A stretch of 64,000 nt of DNA from Vicugna vicugna (GCA_013265495.1 MU059903.1:496001-560000); one strand, 5' to 3'; positions 17,595 to 56,400 are shown, counted from the stretch's first letter. Program-made: numbers and translations. Notes: generated by a model not told the origin, from the letters alone.

Positions 17595-19900
17595 GAGGCA
17601 CACCTGAGAGATATTGCAGGTTTGGTTCCAAATTACCGCAATAAAGCCAATGTCACAATAAAGCCAGTCACATGAATGTTCTGGTCCCTGAGTGCATATG
17701 AAAGTTATGTTTATGCTACACCGCAGTCTATTAAGCCTGCAATAGCATTATGTATATATCTTAATTTTAAAATAAAAATCTGGCGGACGTCACATAAAAA
17801 GCAATGGACATACCTTGATTTTAAAATACTCCATTGCTAAAAAAGGCTAACCATCATCTGAGCCTTCAGCAAGTCATAACTGTTTGGCTGGCGGAGGGTC
17901 TTGCCTCGATGTTGATGGCTGCTGACTTTTCCAGTGGTGGTTGCTGACGGCTTGGGCAACTTCTTACCATGAGAGAGACAACAATGACGTTTGCCACACC
18001 AATTGACTCGTCCTCTCGTGATTCCTCTGTAGCAAGCAGGACTAGCTGACAGCATCTTACCCACAGCAGAAGTTGTCTCTCAGTTGGAGTTGATCCTCTC
18101 AAAGCCTGCCACTGCTCCATCAACTGCGCTAGTGTGCCTCTAAGTCTAAGTCCTCTGCCGTCACCTCAACAGTCTTCACAGCATCTTCACCCAGAGCGGA
18201 TTCCATCTCAAGAAACCACCTTCTTGGCTCATCCATAAGAAGCAACTCCTCAGCCATCCAAGTTCTATCCTGAGATGGCAGCAGCCCAGCCACCCCATCA
18301 GGTCCCAGGTCGAATTCTCGTTCTCCTGCTGCTTCCACCACAACTGCAGTTACTTCCTCCACGAAGTCCTGAACCTCAAAGTTATCCACGAGGGCTGGAA
18401 TCCACTGCTTTCAAACTCCTGTGTGTGCTGATATTCTGACCTCTTCCCATGAATCATGAATGTTCTTAAGGACATCCACCATGGTAAATTCTTTCCAGAG
18501 GGTTTTCAACTGACTTTGCCCAGACCCATCAGAGGAATCACTGTCTATGGCAGCTATAGCCTCACAAAATGTACTCCCTAAATAATAAGATTTGAAAGTC
18601 GAAATTCCTCCTTGATCCCTGGGCTGCAGGAAGGATGCAGGCACGGAAACAATGTTGATCTCACAGTCTGTCTCCACCAGGGCTCCTGGGGGACCAGCGG
18701 CACTGTCAATGAGCAGTAACAGTTTGAAAGAAATCTTTCTGAGCAACAGGTCTCAAGAGTGGGTTTAAAACACTCGGTAAGCCCTGTTGTACACAGATGT
18801 GCTGCCATCAGGCATGTCTGTTCCGTTTACAGAGCACAGGCAGAGGAGTCAGCATACTTCCCAGGCTGTTCAGATGGTGAACGAGCACTGGCTTCAACCC
18901 GAAGTCAGCAGCTGCGTGAGCCTCTGGCGGAGGGTCAGCCTGTCCTGTGAAGCCCTGAAGCCAGGCACTGGCTTCTCCCCTCTCGCGAGGAAAGCCCTAG
19001 ATGCTGTCTTCTAATACAAGGCTGTTTCCCCTGCGCTGAAAATCTGCTGTGTAGTGTAACCACCTTCATGAATGATCTGAGCTAGATCTCCTGGAGAACT
19101 CGCGGCTCCACCTCACACTTTGATGTCACAGAGGCGGCTTCCTTCCGCCAACCTCATGAACCAGCCACCTCTGCGGGCTTCCAACCGTTCTTCTGCAGCT
19201 TCCTCCCCCTCTCAGCCCCCGCAGAAATCAGTGCGCCAGGGCCTGGGTCTGGATGAGGCTCTGGCGTAGGGAGTGTCGAGCCTGCTTGAGCTTTCTCCAC
19301 ATCAGCAATAAGGCTGTTTTGCTCTTTGCTTTCTCATCATTCATGTGTTCGCTAGAGGACCACCTTTCATTTCCTTCAAGACCTCCTTGGCCATCACAAC
19401 TTGGCTGTTTGGCACAAGAGGCCTCACTTTCTGCCCATCTCAGCTTTCGACAAGCCTTCTTCACTAAGCAGAATCATTTCCAGTTTTCAACTGAAGGTGA
19501 GAGATGTGTGACTTCCTTTCACTTGGGCACTCAGAAGCCATTGTAGGGTTATTAATTGGCCTAATTTCAACACTGTGTCTCAGGGAAGAGGCAGGCCCAA
19601 GGAGAGGGAGCGATGGGGGACCGGCTGGTAGGGCGAGCAGTGAGAACACACATTTGTAAGTTTCCCCATCTTATATGGGCATGATTTGGGATGCCCCAAG
19701 ACAATTACAAGGGTAACAAAGATCGCAGATCACCATCACAAATATAATAATAATGGAAAAGTATGAAATATTGCGAGAATTATAAAAAATGTGACAAGAG
19801 ACATGAAGTGAGCAAATGCTGTTAGAAAAATAGCGCTGACAGACTTGCTCCACTGACAGTCGCCACAAACCTTCAGTCTGTAAAATGCACGGTATCTGTA
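17595..19900 (-). mobile_element. Near-full-length, heavily decayed Tigger1 DNA transposon
   Basis: TA plus TIR-like GAGGCACACCTGAGAGATATTGC at 17593-17617. Transposase fragments lie in several frames (19228..19464, 18578..18808, 18411..18746 with FKLLLLID and QPRDQG, 18129..18389, 17837..18064). The right end is eroded. Confidence 0.9.
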
Positions 19901-30030: not shown

Positions 30031-31339
30031 CTCTTCTAGAACATCTTTAAATAAGCTCTTAATTTTAAAAAATAGTTGCTTATACAGTTTCAGCAGCAGT
30101 CTTTGGAAAACTACGAATGAGGGTTATTTTTACACGCAACTGTCTTTAGAACAATACTTTCTTAAAAAGTCTTAACACTAAAGTTGTCAGACTATAATCA
30201 AAGTGCAAACTGAGTTTCAAATTTACTCTAATGAAAAATAAACAAAACTCCGTAATTTGAAGGGGATAATAAAATTCCATAACAAAGGATGGATTTTTCA
30301 TGAAAAAAGAAAAATCAACAACTGCTACACGCGAAGTATTTACTTTCACAGCCCAACAGGGAAGTTCAACGATAAAGTGACAAAGCCCATCCAGCAGAGG
30401 AAAAGCCCTTTCTGAAATAGTGTCTCCCCAGTTCCTACACAGCTGCATCTCCACTTTGGAATCTCCCTCAAGCATTTGCACTGAGCTGTACACAATATCC
30501 TCGCAGGCATCAAACGCTACCAACTTAATGTTTACAATTATTCAGAAAAACAGTATTTTAATCTCTACCAAACTTCAACCAACTCATAAGCTTTCCATAC
30601 AATCTCCCTCATAGATCTGATGACTTCTAGACTTATTTCCTGAGAAACCTAAGAGACTACCCTTCTAGAATGGGAAACCTTAATGGTTCTGTGGGAGATG
30701 CTTTCATGCACAGTCATCCAGGAGCTAGGTATAATTCATCTCAGTGCTCAGATAAGGAGATAAAGACAGAGAGTGGTAAAGTTGCAGGAGAAAAGGCAAG
30801 ATTTCAACCCCCAACTGATTACAACCTCACTGGCCTGCAATTCCCAAATTAAAAAAAAAAAAAAAGCAGCTAGACTGCTGCTGATCAAAAGCACTACCTC
30901 CGGATTAAGAAAAATCACACATAAAATAAGATGAAAAAGCAAAGAAAGCAGCAGCCACTGAAAGACTGTATTTAACGTAGAGACGAAACTCTAAGCGACA
31001 TGGAAATGACACCACGCCCAGTCCGCTCCCCGAGACATAGATTATTATGTCTGTAACCTAAACACCGATTATCAGAATAAAAACCACCCAATTTCTGGCC
31101 TAAGGAAGGAAAATGAGACTGGGAGGACTGGGGGCCCATTTTCTCTCTCCCAGCTTTGTCTGATCACCGGCTTAGGGTTCTGACGGCTGACCCAGGCCTG
31201 GATGCGGGTCCTCCTAGAATCCTTAGAGCACCGTTAAAGCTGAGGCGGGTACCAAAGAACCAGAGCGCACCGCTGACAAACAACGGTTGCCGAAAACGTG
31301 TTGTCATCCGCACCGTAAGCTACTGGAACCACTTTTCCT

Positions 31340-32190
31340 CTTTGCAGCGGGCAAGATTTGAGGCTCCTCCCTGCCCTGAGGCCGCCTCCCGGCGCCGCCG
31401 CTGCGGGCCGTTACCCCGCGGCCTGCCGCCTCGCGTCCCCGCGCCCCGCCGGCCGCCCGCGCCCCCGCCCCCGCCCGGCCCGCTCACCTCCAGGCGCAGG
31501 GACGCCCCGCAGCCTCGCAGGAACTCGCGGATGTTGCTCAGGCACTCGCCCTCGCTCCGGGGCTCCGGGTAGACCTGCAACACAGAGCACAGACGCTGAG
31601 CGCCGCGGGGAGGCCGCGGACGCGCCCCGAGGCGCCCCCGAGACGGCCCCAGCGGGCGTGCCGGCCCCGCCGGCGACCAGGGCGCGCGGCCCCGGCGGCC
31701 CGGAGCGACCCTGGCCGTCCCCGCGCCCGCCCGCTGGGCCGCCGCCTCTCCTCACCCTTTTTCCTTCCTCCGGGCTGCACCAATCTCAGGCCCCTTCCTT
31801 CACCAGGAAGTGGAGCGGCGCCGGAAGTGACGTCTTCAGACCGCGCCCCGGCCGGCCGACACGCGACCTCTTCCGGTCCCCCGCCTCCCGAACGCGGCCC
31901 ACCCGGCCCGGCGCGCGGCCTCCTCTTCTCCGCACCTGGGGCTCGGCCTCCCTCCTGCGGCACCTGGCGCTTGCCCTCGGGCGCGGCCTCTTGACCTACC
32001 CACGCGCGGACTTTTCCGCCGGCACCTGGCGCTCGCCCTCGGACACGACCCGCCGGGCCCGGCCCACGCGCGGACTCTCGGCAGCTCGCCCTCCGACGCG
32101 GCCCCGGCGGACACAGCCGGCCCCGCCCAAGAGGGGCCCGGAGAGCTCGGCCTCGGCTGCTCGGTGTTCCTCAAGTTCCTCCTCGCCCCT
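31340..32190. promoter_or_regulatory. Internal CpG island around exon 2; probable alternative or bidirectional promoter
   Basis: Dense CpG. Tandem ETS sites CAGGAAGTG (31804-31812) and CCGGAAGTGACGTC (31821-31834, ETS-CRE composite), plus an opposite-orientation CTTCCGG near 31870. Confidence 0.8.
31488..31574 (-). CDS. ARHGEF7: ARHGEF7 coding exon 2; 87 nt, VYPEPRSEGECLSNIREFLRGCGASLRLE (CH domain)
   Basis: Acceptor TTGCAG| (AG at 31576-31575), donor GAG|GTGAGC (31487). In frame with exon 1 and matches the known beta-PIX CH domain. Confidence 0.96.
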
Positions 32191-33246
32191 CTAGAGTGGA
32201 GCTAGAGTTCTAATACTACGATTTTAAATAATTAGCAACGTAAATTATGCATGCTGGGATTAAAGTGCAGTGTTTTCTTTTCCAAGTATAGACCATGTGC
32301 TTCATGAATGATTAACCAAAATAGCCGGTTACTCGTCCGCGAATAGCTGCAGAGAAATCGCGGCAAATGCAGCCTCCACCACAGGAGAAGAGCAGCGAGG
32401 GCTCCTGCAGACCGTCCGGTGCTTGGTCGAAGGCAGAACTGTGAGGGCCACCGGCCACACGTATAAGGAGTTACTGACAGCCTCCCAAGGCAAGAGACTA
32501 AGGAAACCAGGAACAGTACCAATGACAGAACATTCAAGCGAGAAGCTGAGCTCTCAGAAGACCTTTTGTTGTTCCGAAGTACATATGAAGCCTCTATGTT
32601 TGGCAGTTATTACACTAAAGTATCATCCAGAATTAAAGCATTTGAGGACTCTAGACATTTTTGTCCTTCTGACCTCTAGGGGGAAATCACGGTATTCCAT
32701 CAGGGCTCTCAGGAATACTGGTTTCATTTCAAAGTACTCAGGCCTTTTAAAATTACAAAACTAAGCCAGAGCGTTCAGCAGTGCAAAGAGGGAAGAAATG
32801 AGACTTCTTTTTCCTACAGTTTAAAAATTCTTAGAAATGCCAACATTTTTCCCTCCAAATATTGAACAGATCTTTTTCCCCAGTGGAACTTGAGTGGACC
32901 TGCAATACCAAAGCTGCCTTCTAGTCCATTTTACTCCTCCCCCTCAGTTCCTGCATCAGTCAATCTTCATGATTCACAGATTCTGTATTTGCAAACTCAC
33001 CTATTTGATAAAATGTATGTGCAATCCCCAAATCAGTATTTTCCACACCTTCTCAGTCATTTATAGACATGGGGAGAACAAGGAATTTGAATTGCCTTAT
33101 GCATACATTTCCAGCTCAGTCTGAACAAGGCCATGCTCTGCCGTCTTGCTTAACCTCGTGATACAAGCAGGTGTCCTTTTTGCTGTCTACTGATGCCACA
33201 TTTTTCACTTTTTTTTTTCTTTTTCCTGGGGATTTCACTGTTCTAA

Positions 33247-35019
33247 ATGGCCCCCAAGCGCAGTGCTAACGCACTGTCTAGTGTTCCTAAGCGTAAGAAG
33301 GTTGTAATGTGCCTTACGGAGAAAATCCGTGTGCTGGATAAGCTTCATTCAGGCCTGAGTTACAGTGCTGTTGGCCATGAATTCAATGTTAATGAGTCAA
33401 CAGTACGGTACGTCCAGAAAAAGGAAAAGGAGATTCGCAGATCTGTACGTGAAGCTGCTCCAGAAAGTGCCAAAGTAACCTCCATCGTATGTGATGCAGC
33501 TATGGGAAAGATGGAAAAGCAGCTAAATTTGTGGATTCAGGAGATGACAACCAATAGAAAGGGCATAGTGGACAGCGCTGTTGTGAGGCTGAAAGCCAAA
33601 GAAATTTACAGTCATGTTACCCAGGGTCAAGAAAACATTAAACCCTTCTCAGCTAGTGCAGGCTGGCTCACACGATATAAAAGGCGATACCCCATGAAAA
33701 ATGTTAAACTTGCAGGCAAGACAAGTTCCACAGATCAAGAGGCTGCAGAAGAATTTTAAAAATACCTGTTAAGCATTATACATGAAAAGGGTTATACAGA
33801 AGAGCAGGTTTTTAATGCTGATGAAACTGGCTTATTTTACAAGAACGTTGGCAAACGAACCTATGTAATGCAAATGGCCTCAAAAGCTCCTGGCTTTAAA
33901 TCATTCAAAGACTCCGCAACCTTGCTGTTATGTGCAAATGCCAAGGGTGACTTTAAGTGCAAACCCCTCCTGGTACACAGAGCACAAAACCCACGAGCAC
34001 TTAGAGGGAAAAACTTGAACCGTATGCCAGTCCACTGGAGATGGAACAAAAAGGCATGGATGGCGTCTGATATATTCTGGGATTGGTTCCACCACTGCTT
34101 CATCCCAGAAGCTGAACGCTATCTCCATGGCAAAAACCTTGCCTTCAGGGTTTTAATTTTGGATAGTTCCCCAGTTCATTGCCGTGAAGAACTCAAAAAT
34201 GCCCACCCTGACATAGAAGTTCTCTTAATGCCCCCAAACACAGCATCTCTCATGCAACCGCTCAGTCAGGGTGTGATCAAAGCTTTCAAGGCACTCTACA
34301 CCAGGGAGCTTTATAGCAAGGCTTCTGAGGCTCTCAGTGCCAACAAGGGGACCACCATGATGGACTACTGGAAGGCAGTCATTATACGCAATGTTATTGA
34401 CTATGACAGCACAGCCTGGGACAGTATCAAGCAGGCTACCATCAATAATTGTTGGGGAAATGTTTGGCCAGACTGTGTGAAAAACTTTGAAGGTTTTGAG
34501 GGTGTTACGGAAAATATAAAGAACAGTATCAAAAACATAATGCACATTGCACAACAGATAAGTGGAGAAGGTTTCCACGACATGAAGGAAGGAGACATGG
34601 AGGAAATTTTGGCAGAAATGGCCGTAGAACCCACTATCAAAGAGCTGGACGAGATGGCAAAACAAAGCTCTGGAGTCAGCGACAAGGATGGTGGTGGCGA
34701 TCAGCCTGAAGCTCCAAGAATTGTTCCTCTCACAGCAGCCAAAATATCGGAATGGAACTCCGCCTTGGAAAAAATTTTCAATGACGTGAACAAGTGTGAC
34801 CCTGTGTCCGAATGCAGCCTTACATTTAAACGCCTTACCTCCACGGCATTCATCCCTTACGCCGTGATGCTTAAAGATTTGAGGCAACGAGCCAAGCGGA
34901 CAACGCTGAAGCCATTTTTCAAGCCAGTTTGGGAGGGAAAGTTGCTGACAGCATCCACCAGCTGTGAAAGCCAGGCTCCTGAGGGAGAACTGCCAGGTCT
35001 CACGTGCCACCCTCATTGA
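33247..35019 (+). CDS. Near-intact Tigger/pogo (TIGD/CENP-B-like) transposase frame, 590 codons with one in-frame TAA (33757-33759). Status as gene or recent pseudogene unresolved
   Basis: ORFs 33247..33759 and 33868..35019 are in the same frame and the intervening codons are open (KYLLSIIHEKGYTEEQVFNADETGLFYKNVGKRTYV). NLS PKRKKV, CENP-B-type HTH domains, and DDE_1 motifs FNADETG, LILD and QPL(S)QG. Confidence 0.7.
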
Positions 35020-35239
35020 CCTCGTCCTCTCTGCCCAGTAAGTTTCACCACTCTCCCTTGGATTTCATGGGGCAAGCCAGGGTCCAGAGGTTTAACCACA
35101 CCATGTTCACTGCCCCACCACGCATCCCATGGCTCCACCAACAGTAAGGTTTCCATACATTTTAAAATGTTTAATCTTTTCTTAATGCCTTTTTCAGGGC
35201 ATTCTTACATTCCTGTGCGTATTATACAGTATACAGCAG

Positions 35240-35255
35240 GTGTGTGTGTGTGTGT
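35240..35255. repeat. (GT)8 microsatellite inside the Tigger4 3' region
   Basis: Direct reading. Confidence 0.85.
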
Positions 35256-36869
35256 CCTGTGTATATGACGGAAAGCAAGAGTTAAATTAGAACAGTAATG
35301 CTATGGTAGATCACATGATGCTGTAACGGAAATACTGTTTTATTATAAAGAAATATTGCATGTAGTTATTTGTAAAAATATATGTTAAATAGGCCATCTC
35401 TGGACAGAAATGGGCCAAAAACAAGATTATGTAGTCATTCGTTGACCAAATGTTGTGACCTGAGTCCCAGAGCAAACTAACCCTGTGCTTCCCTGGGAAC
35501 AGTGTTTCATTCAGTGGTCACAGTGACTTTGCAGAAGGCAACTACCAATAATAAGAATTGATTCTACATTTGGAATTATTAGTCCACAAAGATCTGATTG
35601 TTATGGTTTCTCTTCTGAATTCACACAACTGTTATGAGTTCACCAATAATGGAAACATATGTTACAGTTTTTGATGAAAAGCATTAAATATAACATGCAG
35701 ATTTTTTTGTGGAAATATATATCTTAATGAGATGTGTAGGGTTTTTTTAATGAGTTCCCTTTCTCCCGAATGACCATGAGTTACTGCGGGAAGGACATGG
35801 CATATACGTTATCTAGTCCTATCCTGAGGTTCTTTATGCAAACACTGAGAAAACTTGTTCATAAAAATTAGTGCATGGAAATGGAAGGAGTTTTGTTTGA
35901 ATGTAACTTGATCCTTTGAAGCCTTCTGAGTTACATAGCCGAAGTCCAGATATAATCTGTCATAAGTAAAAATTTTAGATCAGCTAACATCCTGATTAGA
36001 GTCTCCTTGAATTTCCATGAAAGCTAAGAAGTGGAACCCTGAGCTGCAATGTGCAGTCATCAGAGTCATTCCCCTCCCAGCACCGCAGGCAGTTCCCGCT
36101 GCGCTCTGTGACACGGCCAGGACACCCTCCACCCTGCAGCCCACCCCTCAGGAAGACAAGGGGTGAAGCAAGAGAAGGCCGGCCTGAGCGGGGTGGGTGG
36201 GACAGCTGGGCCAGCCTGACGCTTTCCTCGGTCACAGGCAGCTCCTCGGGCTGGTCACTGTTAGTTGAGCACACACGCAAGCTGAGGACCTGGCAGTGGA
36301 TTCCCTTAAAACTGTCCTGAACTCTCTACCTAAAGCAACACAGCTGTTTGGAGAACTGTAACCTGAAAGAGTCAAGTCTTTGTAGTAAGTAGTTCCTAAC
36401 TGTAACATGCATACTGACCTTGGACAAGCCTCCGGGCCTCTCTGTGTCTACACCCCTGTCCCCAGTTTAAGGTTCACACATTCAGCCTGTGTCACAGGGC
36501 TGCTGGGAGGATCGAATGCATAATAAATGACTTCAATAGTACAGGGCCAGATGACGTGAAGGGCACCATGCCTGCGGAGAAGAGAGCCAGACCCTGCCCT
36601 CACGCAGGAGAACGCACACACGTGACAGGTGCACTCAGGACCATGGAGGCCAGACGGACAGAGGTGTCGCAGCCCAAACGGTGACACCTGAGCTGGGGGG
36701 AAAGGGCCAAGAGGCAGATGGAGCTGCATCTTCAAAGGTGTGATGTTTAAAAAAGCCATCATGTTTTCAAGGGTGGTGAGTACGGAGGGTACCTGAGGCT
36801 GTGGGTGAACCTGCAGTGGAAAAAAAATGCATCTGAGATAGAATGATACCAGAGGAGAGTTTAAAAGCC

Positions 36870-38520: not shown

Positions 38521-41020
38521 CCACCTGCCTGCCCCGTGCTCCAGGGGGCTGACCCCTGGGGGCTGCATCAGCCCGGCTGCCCTGCTCTCCGGCTTCCGGG
38601 AGCAGGAGGCCAGCAGGCAGGTGACTGCCCCGCTGGGCAGGGGACGCAGCGCGGAGATGTCCCAGGGCTGCTCACAAGAGCCAACCATGTGCTCCCCTTG
38701 CCCCAACTCTGCCTTCAGTGATGTCACGTTGGAGCTTGGAACCAGCCACAGTGGAAGCAGTCACCCCACAGAAGTCACCAGACACCACAGATCCAGGCTT
38801 CTCGCCACAGAGACTTGTTGTCAAGCCTTTACCAATGCCCGCCAGCCTCAGCACCTGCTCCCCCATGCTTCCCTGGGGTGTCCTTACCCCGCCCTCACTT
38901 TGTGATTAGTGTCGCCATCTCTGTGCTGTGTTTTCTGGGGGGACCCTAACCCGGTGAGCTTCCTGGGGTACAGTTAGAAAGAGAACAGCATTACAGCAGA
39001 AAATGAGAAACAACTGAGAGAAAGGGTTAAATCCATCACAGTTCTGCCGTAGAACAGATCACCACCGCAAAGGGCGGCCTTTTAAAAAGAGGCGGCTCTA
39101 TACACTAACAGGTCGTGACTTCCTGGCTGTGGTAGGTGGGGGAAGAGGAACACAGGGAACAGGGTGCACGACTTACTACCTTCTATATTTAAAGAAAAAA
39201 GCAAGAAAACATGCCTGGGTGTTCAGAAATGCAGGGACCACCTCTGGAAGCACACCAGACCCCAGAGGGGAGAGGCCATGGCCGGGGGGCAGGAGAAGAA
39301 GGGAAACTCACTGTTCACTCTGTCCTCTGATGCCCTTTGAATTTTGCACCACATACAAGTACTAGAAAACAGTTTTTTAAGACAGGCACTCCCACTGTCA
39401 GGGCGTGCGGTCCCTGTAGGGCAGGCCTCCACGCTCCGTGCTTAGATGAAGCACTATTTCAAATCCTACGTTCACCTCCTGAAAGTCTGCCTACCACCTG
39501 ATGGCTCATCTAACTTCTAATTACCTGGTAGCCATCGCTTCACTCTGACTAGGTCGCAGCCGTCTCCTGACCAGGGACCACGTCTTCCCCGGGAGCCCTC
39601 ATCCTGAAGCCGGAGAGGCTCAGTGGAGGGAAGATAGGTCGGCAACTCACATGGAAGGCTGCCGAATCCACCAGAAAACAATGGAGCGCCCGGCAGAGAG
39701 CTCAGGGGCTTGGTTGCTAAATACCAGATAGGTAAATTAGCTCCCCAAAAGCGTGTAGCCTGGGATTGCAGGTCGTTTACTGGAAGAAACGTAGGCCTTT
39801 AAGAAAGTACGTTTCTCTTTTGCTTTCCTCCTTCTTCAATGTATCCTGAAGCCCAGCTCCTACTTGGATGCTATGGTCATCTCAGGAAAGATAAAAATAT
39901 CTTCTATCAGCATGCGACTTGCCAAGTTACTAAGGGCACTCAGAAATATGGACACACTAAGTTCGGCCATCCCAGACATGTGGGAGGTCGAGGCGGGACA
40001 AGCAAGCCTGCATGGCTTAAATTAGCTCGTGTGTCCCTCGAGGCCTGATTCCCACAAACTCCAAAAGCACATTTTAAGTCCTTCCAAGATGGTGGCAACC
40101 GTTCCAAATTCATACCAATGCCCAAAATGGACTTTTAAAATGTAAGCATAAACATTCTCCAGATAACCTAGTTAAATTTCTCCACTGAAGTTGTATTTTG
40201 CGCCCTCAATAATCTAGATCAGAACAGGCAGGTGTGTATTAATTGTCAAGTGAGAACAATCTGGAAAGCAGCACATGTCCGTCTGGCTGTGCCCGGGACG
40301 GGCCCTTGTTAATGTGCCACTCGGTCCTTCAGCAGACGCCGTTTCTTACACCTGTGAAGGCTCTTGATCCGGGAAGAGTACAGACTCGTCAGACGACGCA
40401 AACTGGGCCTTGTGGTCAGAGACTTCTTAACTGCAGTTTCACCTGTTCATGTGAATAATCACCTTTTCCCTCTCATTCTCACACTTTCCACCTGGGAACC
40501 GGCATTTGTCAGGCTGGCCCTGCTTGCTCTCTTCCCCAGCTCACTGTCTGCTTGTTCCCGGTCCTCTGACATCCATTTCCTCTCCCAGTGGACACGTTTC
40601 AGAGTGACTGGCGAGATCTTTCCCTGCTGTCCATTGGTGGGAAAGCCCACGGAGAAGGCCTGTGGTCCCCAGTGGGAAGGTGGGAAGTAAATCCAGTGGG
40701 AACTTGCCGGGTCCCTTTGTAGTCTCAGTGCAGCAGGCAGGCCGGGACCCTCCAGGATGGAGCCCCCACCCCCGCAGCATGTGCGATCGCTCTCAGAATG
40801 GACACTGGTGGCAGTGGTCTCACAGGTCTGCTCTTTGCCTCTTGAACAGCCCAGCCTCCTGCCTTTGACTGGGACATCTCAGGTTAGAAGGTCTAGTCCT
40901 GTCCCCGCAGCCACTGCTGGAGCTGCACTGCTCAGACCTGCGCTCTCCGATGTCTCCGAGGGCTCCGAGCCTGCCCTGCTGCCCCCCTCACCTACCTCGC
41001 TGCCCGTGCTCCATCCCCTT

Positions 41021-54949: not shown

Positions 54950-56400
54950 GTGGGGAGGGCAGTAAATCATTTCACAACCCAGCCCTCGGCTATTGATAAA
55001 TGCACCTTTTAAAAATGCACAGCAATTGGTCAGCTAAACAGAGGGTGAAACTCATACGACACCACCCACAAAAGCTATTCAAACAAAGCCTGGGAGGAAG
55101 CATTGCACGGCGCAGGAGCCGGGTTCTCCGGTCAGGTCGCGGAGGGGGCGACTCCTCCTTCAGGCGGGGCAGAGCAGAGAGCTCCCCTTCCCTCCCGGCC
55201 TCCCCCCGGGCCGTTCCCCTTGAACGCGGCCCGGCCCCCTCCCCAGCCGGCACCGCACACAATGGCGCCCCGAGCGGGATCCCGCCACCGGGTCCTCGCG
55301 CCGCCAGCGCGCCCCCCGCGCGGTCCGCGTTCCCGGGTCCGCGCACAAAGGAGGCGCGTGGGCTCCTTCGCGCCCCGCGCGGCCACCAGGTGCCGGCGCC
55401 AGCGACCCCGCGCCCGAGCGCCTCCGCGCATTCTGGGCCGCGGTGAGGGCAAGGTGGGGCGCGGGGCCTCCCACCGCCCAGGGCTCCCACCGCCCAGGCG
55501 CCCACCGCCGGGCTTCCTTCCCACCGCCCCGGGCCTGTCCGCCGGGGGGGCGCGGGCCGGGGGGCACTCACTTTCTCGATGGTCCCGGGCAGCAGGCGCT
55601 CCAGCAGCCTGCAGAGGACCACCCCATCCTTCAGAGACGCCTGCAGGAAGCCCTCCGGGTCCGAGATGGTTTTCTTGGGCGACTCCAGCACCCCCAAGGT
55701 AATGAGCCACGTAACGGTCTGCTCGGCGGAATTCATAGCGGCGGCGCGCCGGGCCTCCCCGCGCCGCGAGCCCGTCTCGGCGCCGTTCACCTCGGAGCGG
55801 CGGCGGCCCGGCCGGCTGCGCCCACCGCCCCCTCCTCCTGCTCGCCCATGGAGAGGCCGGCGACGGCGATTGGCTCGGGCGGCGCCGCGGTCCGGCCGGC
55901 TCGCGCTCCCTCGCGTGCGTCCTGGCCGACTGTCAAGTGCCTTTTCATTAGATGCACATGAACCTGCGGCGGCCGCCCGGCGCCGCCCCCGCCGCCGCCT
56001 CCCGGCTCCCAGCCGCTGCCGCCGATGACATCACTGCGAGGAGAAGAAAGACGCCGCGCTGGAGCGGCCCCGCGCCCCGGGCCCCTGCCTCCCGGCCCCG
56101 CGACCCCCGGGCCCGCCGGCACCCGGCCGCCGCACACGCGCCCGCCGCCGGGCGCCCCCGCCGTGCGCCCTCCACACCCTGGCCGGCTGTGAGCGCGCGT
56201 CCCCACCTGCGCCGCCGGGTGGTGGCCCCCCCCCCGCCCCAAGGGCCCGATGACCTCCAGGAGGCGACAGCCTGGCGGCCAGGGAGGACTCGCCGGGCCT
56301 CCCAACCCGCGGGTTGCGCGCGCCCTTAACCGTTTGCGCCCGGCGGGGCCCAAGCGCAGCCCCCGCTCCGATGCGAGACCCGGGCCAGGCACCTCTCGCT
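54950..56400. promoter_or_regulatory. CpG island / main ARHGEF7 promoter
   Basis: Very GC- and CpG-rich and spans exon 1. NF-Y box AGCCAATCG on the minus strand (ATTGG at 55869-55873), CRE-like TGACATCA at 56026-56033, many GC boxes. Boundaries approximate. Confidence 0.85.
55572..55736 (-). CDS. ARHGEF7: ARHGEF7 (beta-PIX) coding exon 1, long CH-domain isoform; 165 nt, [55 protein letters not shown]
   Basis: Translation matches the recognised ARHGEF7 N-terminus. ATG at 55736-55734; donor AAA|GTGAGT with the intron starting at 55571; phase 0; lies inside a CpG island. Confidence 0.97.

Follow-up and report, generated by a model that had tools for sequence, protein, structure and literature searches.

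A probable unitary pseudogene in Vicugna vicugna: the camelid copy of an ancient domesticated pogo/Tigger gene antisense in intron 1 of ARHGEF7

A stretch of 64,000 nucleotides from the Vicugna vicugna genome (GCA_013265495.1 MU059903.1:496001-560000, hereafter the window, with positions counted from its first letter) contains a Tigger-family (pogo) transposon with a nearly open transposase frame, situated antisense in the first intron of ARHGEF7. The element is very probably a unitary pseudogene, namely the camelid copy of an ancient and unnamed domesticated pogo/Tigger gene. Domesticated pogo transposases such as CENP-B, JRK, TIGD1-7, POGK and POGZ constitute a well-known set of genes with obscure functions. 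An original prediction made on the window had considered the frame as kept by purifying selection, and had proposed either an unrecognised, lineage-restricted domesticated transposase or one inactivated very recently. The analysis of orthologues supported the domestication and the recent loss. It contradicted the lineage restriction, as the gene is found both in Laurasiatheria and in colugo; as for its being unrecognised, the databases give it only 'TIGD1-like' labels.

The transposase-derived frame comprises 590 sense codons followed by a terminal TGA and, as originally described, it has only one internal stop and no frameshift. The open stretches at 33247-33759 and 33868-35019 share one reading frame, and the translation shows 83-85% amino acid identity to the intact orthologues P0002, P0003 and P0004. 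Pfam identified CENP-B_N, HTH_Tnp_Tc5 and DDE_1 in this order, all above the curated cut-offs, which is the domain composition of a pogo/Tigger-derived protein. Both CENP-B-type helix-turn-helix (HTH) domains named in the original prediction were found, along with the bipartite nuclear localisation signal (KR...PKRKKV), which occupies residues 4-19. The N-terminal piece of the protein matched the structure of the CENP-B DNA-binding domain (1HLV, E 2e-4), and the search with the catalytic piece against PDB sequences gave no match. The earlier view that the DDE_1 motifs are kept was correct only in part. The DDE_1 fold is full-length and the catalytic residues D192 (33820-33822) and D306 (34162-34164) are retained, but the third Asp is replaced by Ser340, leaving the D-D-D triad incomplete, and one Leu codon is lost. 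The column of the third Asp is occupied by S or N in all the 22 ARHGEF7-locus orthologues, whereas 115 of 129 other homologues have D there. Because this replacement is common to all 22 orthologues, transposition appears very unlikely as the conserved function. The deleted Leu codon is present in camel and in all other orthologues.

The region between 24 and 43 kb of the window was found to be collinear with loci from fishing cat (L001), plains zebra (L002), colugo (L006) and wild Bactrian camel (Camelus ferus, L008). The identity with the Camelus ferus locus is 95.9% over 20.9 kb. At the cat, zebra, colugo and camel loci the collinear flanks extend over about 20 kb, showing a shared insertion at a syntenic site. 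The open reading frame (ORF) lies antisense within a minus-strand gene with CH, SH3, RhoGEF and PH domains at the cat, zebra and camel loci; the gene calls of the colugo locus contain no host gene. As Laurasiatheria and colugo carry the same insertion, it is older than the Laurasiatheria/Euarchontoglires split. A protein search retrieved full-length relatives with 82-85% identity. Intact products of 586-612 amino acids were found in Felis, Prionailurus, Phoca, Leptonychotes, raccoon dog, three species of Ursus and three species of Equus, and an intact frame of 591 amino acids in a contig which clusters with blue whale. At least five orders keep the frame intact, and the frames of cat, zebra and the whale-like contig can be translated straight from the DNA with no repair. 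In the protein tree, the ARHGEF7-locus group follows the species tree. The flank synteny and the gene tree both identify a single orthologous locus across distant species.

Shortened predicted products of this gene, ranging from 317 to 442 amino acids, were also observed in four species, namely dog (P0020/P0123, 340-425 amino acids), Lutra lutra (P0083, 317 amino acids), blue whale (P0128) and Steller sea lion (P0028). The rows of dog and otter are positioned on long branches of the tree, and those of blue whale and Steller sea lion are either unplaced or not long. Full-length frames are found in close relatives of these species, namely in raccoon dog, bears, seals and another whale-like contig. 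The predicted products suggest further independent losses in dog, otter and some others, and the partial products of dog, otter and blue whale may also be annotation artefacts.

Purifying selection on the frame was evident from several comparisons of the orthologues. Pairwise ratios of non-synonymous to synonymous substitution rates (dN/dS, omega) were estimated according to Nei and Gojobori (NG86) with bootstrap 95% confidence intervals (CI); this estimate and the parsimony polarisation used below for the camelid branches are approximations. The dN/dS was 0.148 between cat and zebra (CI 0.10-0.20), 0.127 between colugo and L007 (CI 0.085-0.18) and 0.20 between the window and cat (CI 0.15-0.27). 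The overall range among orthologues was 0.13-0.20, with all the bootstrap intervals below 0.37, and a maximum likelihood codon model of eight sequences gave an omega of 0.285. Among the window, cat and zebra, the Jukes-Cantor distance of the ORF is 0.10-0.15 (0.06-0.10 at codon positions 1 and 2, and 0.21-0.27 at the third position), compared with 0.22-0.38 in the 5' and 3' non-coding parts of the element and 0.24-0.36 in the flanking intron. The ORF therefore diverged about half as much as the element's own non-coding ends and the flanks. Between pairs of these three species, the ORF differs by only one to three indels, all multiples of three, whereas the non-coding ends (approximately 270 and 530 nucleotides) differ by 4-13 indels per end. 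No frameshift was found in orthologues outside the camelids. Neither the contrast with the flanks nor the state of the orthologous frames speaks against the selection originally proposed. In the intact orthologues, the ratio of the proportions of non-synonymous and synonymous differences (pN/pS) is 0.08-0.35 in every domain, and DDE_1 is among the tightest (0.13). Simulation of neutral evolution since the insertion gave on average 7.8 stops, with a probability of 0.0016 for one stop or none and of about 1e-6 for no frameshift. Coding constraint is thus accompanied by neutral decay of the transposon ends at one locus across mammals. From the dN/dS of the orthologues, the halved divergence of the ORF and its rare in-frame indels, it follows that the locus is a domesticated gene whose origin goes back at least to Boreoeutheria.

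In camelids the gene was lost. The window carries a premature TAA at codon 171. The same codon is AAA in Camelus ferus genomic DNA and in three camel RNA contigs, and it codes for Lys in all other orthologues. The window has in addition its own deletion of three nucleotides after 34152, and all the lesions of Camelus are absent from it. The latter, seen both in the genome and in the three RNA contigs, are an in-frame loss of three nucleotides at codon 61, a gain of one nucleotide at codon 373, and losses of two nucleotides at codon 410 and at codon 431. The window and Camelus have no lesion in common. Between the window and Camelus ferus, pS is 0.048 and pN is 0.030, giving an omega of 0.61. 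The ORF differs by 3.4% between the two, the adjacent non-coding sequence by 2.1-2.2% and the whole locus by 4.1%. The differences were polarised by the whale-like, cat, zebra and colugo sequences. This assigned 7 synonymous and 22 non-synonymous changes to the window branch (omega 0.85), and 8 synonymous and 19 non-synonymous changes to the camel branch (omega 0.64). Each terminal branch is indistinguishable from omega=1, and an omega of 0.15 is rejected for both jointly (p=1e-8). The omega of the camelid stem is 0.19, and the terminal branches differ from the stem significantly (Fisher p=0.0015). The change from 0.19 before the Camelus split to 0.85 after it agrees with the original suggestion of a recent inactivation, where recent is to be understood as of the order of the crown-camelid age.

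The nearly open appearance of the window frame is in line with such a loss. Simulation of neutral evolution since the Camelus split (about 2% divergence) gave on average 1.27 stops, with a probability of 0.64 for one stop or none and of 0.18 for no frameshift, and about two indels are expected under neutrality in this period. One stop and no frameshift in the window are therefore as expected, because neutral decay acted only since the Camelus/non-Camelus split. An open frame under ongoing constraint was not found in the window lineage. What was found is a functional orthologue in other mammals, a disabling lesion in the window and neutral evolution afterwards, the three features of a unitary pseudogene. 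Some points weigh against this interpretation. The counts on the terminal branches are small (29 and 27 changes), and weak residual constraint over part of the branch would likewise fit an omega of 0.64-0.85. The losses in Camelus and in the window lineage could be two independent events with no relaxation in a common ancestor. The TAA is located at the boundary of a T4A5 homopolymer, where an unfixed allele or an assembly slip is conceivable. Moreover, we infer the RNA nature of the camel contigs (L009, L010 and L011, described below) from a splice junction and the list of runs, and not from the record itself.

One alternative is a gene which is still functional in the window species. The TAA could in that case stem from an error in assembly or sequencing, represent a rare allele or be read through, and a full-length protein of 589 amino acids would be made. 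We consider this improbable. The frame has only one lesion and no frameshift, the T4A5 run at the stop corresponds to T3A6 in camel, and the splice donor and the promoter block are unbroken, all of which would suit a functional gene. However, even with the stop set aside, the window branch has 21 amino acid changes against 7 synonymous ones, and with the stop included its omega of 0.85 rejects 0.15 (p=1e-5). The window has also lost the Leu codon beside the second catalytic Asp and the camel-type splice acceptor, and the sister lineage has three frameshifts. No protein of this locus of the window genome is present in a collection of 15 billion proteins. An exact look-up of both ORF pieces of the window in the protein collection found neither, and a homology search with the piece of 170 amino acids gave no truncated protein of near-identical sequence from any other individual.

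Another idea is that the N-terminal fragment of 170 amino acids, with both HTH domains and the nuclear localisation signal but no catalytic core, is kept as a DNA-binding protein like some transposase-derived repressors. As this idea would require, the stop is placed neatly between the DNA-binding module and DDE_1, and both HTH domains stay whole. It is nevertheless a shade less probable than a functional full-length gene. Within codons 1-170, the window branch shows 8 non-synonymous and 2 synonymous changes (omega around 1.1, from small numbers), and four of the changes, R44H, R82C, E87G and F144Y, affect residues which are otherwise invariant among the orthologues. If the transcript were spliced as in camel, 1.3 kb would separate the stop from the exon junction further downstream, making the transcript a probable target of nonsense-mediated decay. 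Finally, an ordinary decaying transposon fossil, never selected and open by chance, would match the degenerate terminal inverted repeats (TIRs), the incomplete catalytic triad and the intronic position, but it is refuted almost completely by the dN/dS of 0.13-0.20, by an ORF diverging half as fast as the non-coding ends and by a simulated joint probability below 1e-8. The indels of the window, cat and zebra frames, which are exclusively in-frame, the frame kept intact by five orders or more and the nine stops in the Tigger1 remnant of the same intron speak against it as well.

Transcription of the locus was assessed from the upstream sequence and from camel contigs. The CpG island upstream of the element is the likely promoter of a sense transcript; it is perhaps also a bidirectional or alternative promoter of ARHGEF7. 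Inside it, a block at 31770-31870 is 84-87% identical between the window and cat, zebra and colugo, compared with 65-73% in the surrounding intron, and its CCAAT, ETS-type and CRE-type motifs are identical across all five species. Three camel Logan contigs from 2025 runs (L009, L010 and L011) have 96% identity to the window. They begin at the equivalents of window positions 31545, 31869 and 31960, respectively, and continue colinearly into the ORF. In L011, the sequence ...CTGCCCG is joined to sequence situated 3.7 kb downstream in the genome, and L010 stops at the same junction. The contigs probably represent sense-strand RNA, because the intron removed is of GT-AG type on the plus strand. 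The same junction in L011 rejects the possibility that they are mere ARHGEF7 pre-mRNA. RNA-seq runs were found with 25-28% of the sampled words, as a divergence of about 4% would leave. Judged from these contigs, the Camelus pseudogene appears to be still transcribed from the sense strand and spliced. At the acceptor, camel has ...ccccag/ctctgcc and the window ...ccccaa/ctctgcc (the slash marks the exon border), an AG to AA change at 38705-38706, which adds one more lineage-specific difference to the transcription unit.

On the basis of these results, the following course of events is very probable for the pseudogene. One Tigger-family transposon inserted before the Laurasiatheria/Euarchontoglires split. 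The whole transposase frame then came under purifying selection, with the TIRs and the untranslated parts left to decay neutrally. The third catalytic Asp was replaced early, as every orthologue has N or S in its place. The retained product would be a nuclear protein of the CENP-B/TIGD type which binds DNA in a sequence-specific manner and has no transposase activity. This putative function is deduced from the domain content, in which two HTH domains at the N-terminus are followed by an RNase H-like core with no catalytic role and by an acidic tail. The CpG island lying about 1 kb upstream probably served as the start of sense transcription, as the camel RNA contigs and the CCAAT/ETS/CRE block suggest. 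Selection was lost around the Camelus/non-Camelus split, after which both lineages evolved near-neutrally and acquired independent lesions. The almost intact look of the frame reflects some 90 million years of constraint followed by only about 2% of neutral divergence, in which about 1.3 stops and two indels are expected.

The features of the window are listed in Table 1. The boundaries of the element are the points at which paralogous copies at other loci (L003 and L004) begin and cease to resemble it. These limits and the TA next to the 3' TIR showed that the predicted ends are real, and the 12 of 18 matches between the TIRs were reproduced. Camel, cat and zebra still have the 5' TA, which a deletion of 10 nucleotides at the junction (32950-32957) has removed from the window. 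The element therefore possesses the TIRs and the TA target-site duplication of a pogo/Tigger transposon. A short (GT)n microsatellite was observed at 35241-35256, within the 3' non-coding part. As the first two coding exons of ARHGEF7 lie on either side of the element on the minus strand, it is placed in intron 1 of this gene and antisense to it, as predicted. The Tigger1 copy which had been cited as a broken internal control is broken indeed. With only 25-34% identity to the ARHGEF7-locus protein family, it belongs to a different Tigger family.

Table 1. Coordinates of the features identified in the window.
Feature	Position	Strand	Remarks
Tigger-family (pogo) element, TIR to TIR	32957-35564	+	antisense in ARHGEF7 intron 1
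5' TIR, degenerate	32957-32974	+	12/18 match with reverse complement of 35547-35564; CAGT start common to paralogues
3' TIR, degenerate	35547-35564	+	TA next, at 35565-35566
Transposase-derived frame	33247-35019	+	590 sense codons and terminal TGA; one internal stop, no frameshift
CENP-B_N helix-turn-helix, residues 15-66	33289-33444	+	Pfam PF04218, E 7.3e-9
HTH_Tnp_Tc5 second DNA-binding domain, residues 88-153	33508-33705	+	Pfam PF03221, E 6.8e-12
Premature TAA, codon 171	33757-33759	+	between DNA-binding and catalytic domains; private to window lineage
DDE_1 RNase H-like catalytic-core fold	33907-34455	+	Pfam PF03184, E 7.6e-42, profile 1-177 of 177
Window-specific 3-nucleotide deletion site, after 34152	34150-34155	+	one Leu of LLILD gone, just before second catalytic Asp
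Third catalytic Asp column, Ser340 (AGT)	34264-34266	+	D-D-D triad not intact
Splice donor GTAAGT	35038-35043	+	18 nucleotides past TGA; used in Camelus
Downstream exon start used in Camelus	38705-38735	+	29-mer match from 38707, 1 mismatch
CpG island	31200-32200	.	GC 0.74, CpG observed/expected 1.01, 134 CpG; about 0.8-1.7 kb upstream of element; encloses ARHGEF7 exon 2
Promoter-like block	~31770-31870	+	CCAAT, two GGAAGTG (ETS-type), TGACGT (CRE-type)
ARHGEF7 CH-domain exon 2 (VYPEPRSE...ASLRLE)	31489-31575	-	AG acceptor and GT donor present
ARHGEF7 coding exon 1 (MNSAEQ...GTIEK)	~55572-55736	-	minus-strand translation
Tigger1-like transposase remnant	18228-19169	-	9 stops in 314 codons; at least 2 frames; same intron

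Long open copies of the same Tigger family are few. The search of 5.8 billion proteins revealed only two conserved genes and one armadillo locus; a swarm of randomly retained open copies, which would have spoken against selection, was not seen. The second conserved gene forms a paralogous group with products of 593 amino acids and is located between CFDP1 (BCNT) and TMEM170A, syntenic in horse (L004:10001-11782) and tiger (L012:10001-11782). Its ORF starts about 620 bp from the end of CFDP1 on the opposite strand. Intact members were found in equids, rhinos, many cetaceans, hippo, felids, bears, pinnipeds, colugo and marmot. The dN/dS between horse and tiger is 0.157, the DDD triad is kept in most species and the group follows the species tree. 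NCBI labels this gene 'TIGD1' or 'TIGD1-like', though its locus differs from that of primate TIGD1. It resembles the ARHGEF7-locus gene in Tigger family (about 76-80% amino acid identity), architecture, length and the position beside the 5' end of a host gene, and differs from it in the locus and in its catalytic Asp residues, all three of which are kept in most species. The armadillo copy (L003:10001-11923) of the same family has an intact frame of 640 amino acids, adjoins a gene with an Fcf2 domain and shows a dN/dS of 0.20 to the horse paralogue. It was rejected as an orthologue of either locus. Its flanks have no synteny with the window, and the neighbour called is the Fcf2-domain gene and not CFDP1 or TMEM170A, the CFDP1 locus being judged by this neighbour only. 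The armadillo copy may represent a third domestication or a rearranged orthologue.

Taken together, there may be two undescribed domesticated Tigger genes in Boreoeutheria, at least about 90 million years old and both with an omega around 0.15. One, antisense in ARHGEF7 intron 1, would have a conserved CpG-island promoter to itself and be catalytically dead in every species; the second, head-to-head with CFDP1, would keep DDD. The first would have been lost repeatedly, in camelids, probably in canids and otters, and apparently in primates. We regard this larger proposal as equally open in both directions. If true, it would extend the CENP-B/JRK/TIGD set and provide a natural knockout series for the functions of such proteins, as lineages with and without the ARHGEF7-locus gene can be compared. 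Under the TIGD1-like label, real and ancient genes under selection in many mammalian orders are hidden, at the ARHGEF7 locus and on the CFDP1 side. The camelid copy offers an example of gene loss with a datable end of constraint and independent lesions in two sister lineages. In the annotation of the vicugna genome, the feature should be entered as a pseudogene, neither as a gene nor as a plain repeat.

The ARHGEF7-locus gene was compared with the named relatives. Its orthologues bear only 'TIGD1-like' or LOC labels in the databases, and among the top database matches none was named TIGD2-7, JRK, JRKL or CENP-B, except for one automatic 'jerky-like' label. Thus the gene is not one of those already named. 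No description of it was found in the literature on ARHGEF7 with Tigger or transposase and on TIGD1-like or TIGD1L, and it is not covered by Mateo & Gonzalez 2014. TIGD1 itself is described as primate-specific, derived from Tigger1 and arranged head-to-head with EIF4E2 (Kalitsis & Saffery 2009, PMC2777200). Both genes have a single-exon Tigger-derived ORF with CENP-B_N, HTH_Tnp_Tc5 and DDE_1, near a CpG-island promoter and in the orientation opposite to the host gene. They differ in the source element, in distribution (only primates for TIGD1, Laurasiatheria and colugo for the ARHGEF7-locus gene) and in the DDD core, which is reported as kept in TIGD1 whereas the third Asp is lost in all ARHGEF7-locus orthologues. 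The position in ARHGEF7 intron 1, and not at the EIF4E2 locus, rejects the identity with TIGD1. Kalitsis and Saffery proposed that a CpG-island promoter can protect a transposon ORF for the time which domestication takes (PMC2777200). The position of the ARHGEF7-locus gene beside such a promoter would fit this proposal, as a resemblance and not as a test of it.

CENP-B, JRK, JRKL and TIGD2-7 share with the ARHGEF7-locus gene the superfamily, the domain order, orthologous single-copy loci, a ratio of non-synonymous to synonymous substitution rates (Ka/Ks) below 1 and a presumed role in DNA binding (Gao et al. 2020, PMC7386202). The ARHGEF7-locus gene is nevertheless a distinct gene, less deeply conserved and lost repeatedly, in camelids and probably in dog and otter. 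In the last systematic survey of the domesticated pogo transposases, Gao et al. came across many 'TIGD1L' sequences and left them out as 'akin to pseudogenes' (PMC7386202). This group of multi-copy TIGD1-like ORFs is the probable place of both the ARHGEF7-locus gene and its CFDP1-side paralogue. Unlike such pseudogenes, the ARHGEF7 and CFDP1 groups each follow the species tree. As each of them represents a single orthologous locus with a dN/dS of about 0.15, they are genes under selection, except in lineages such as the camelids.

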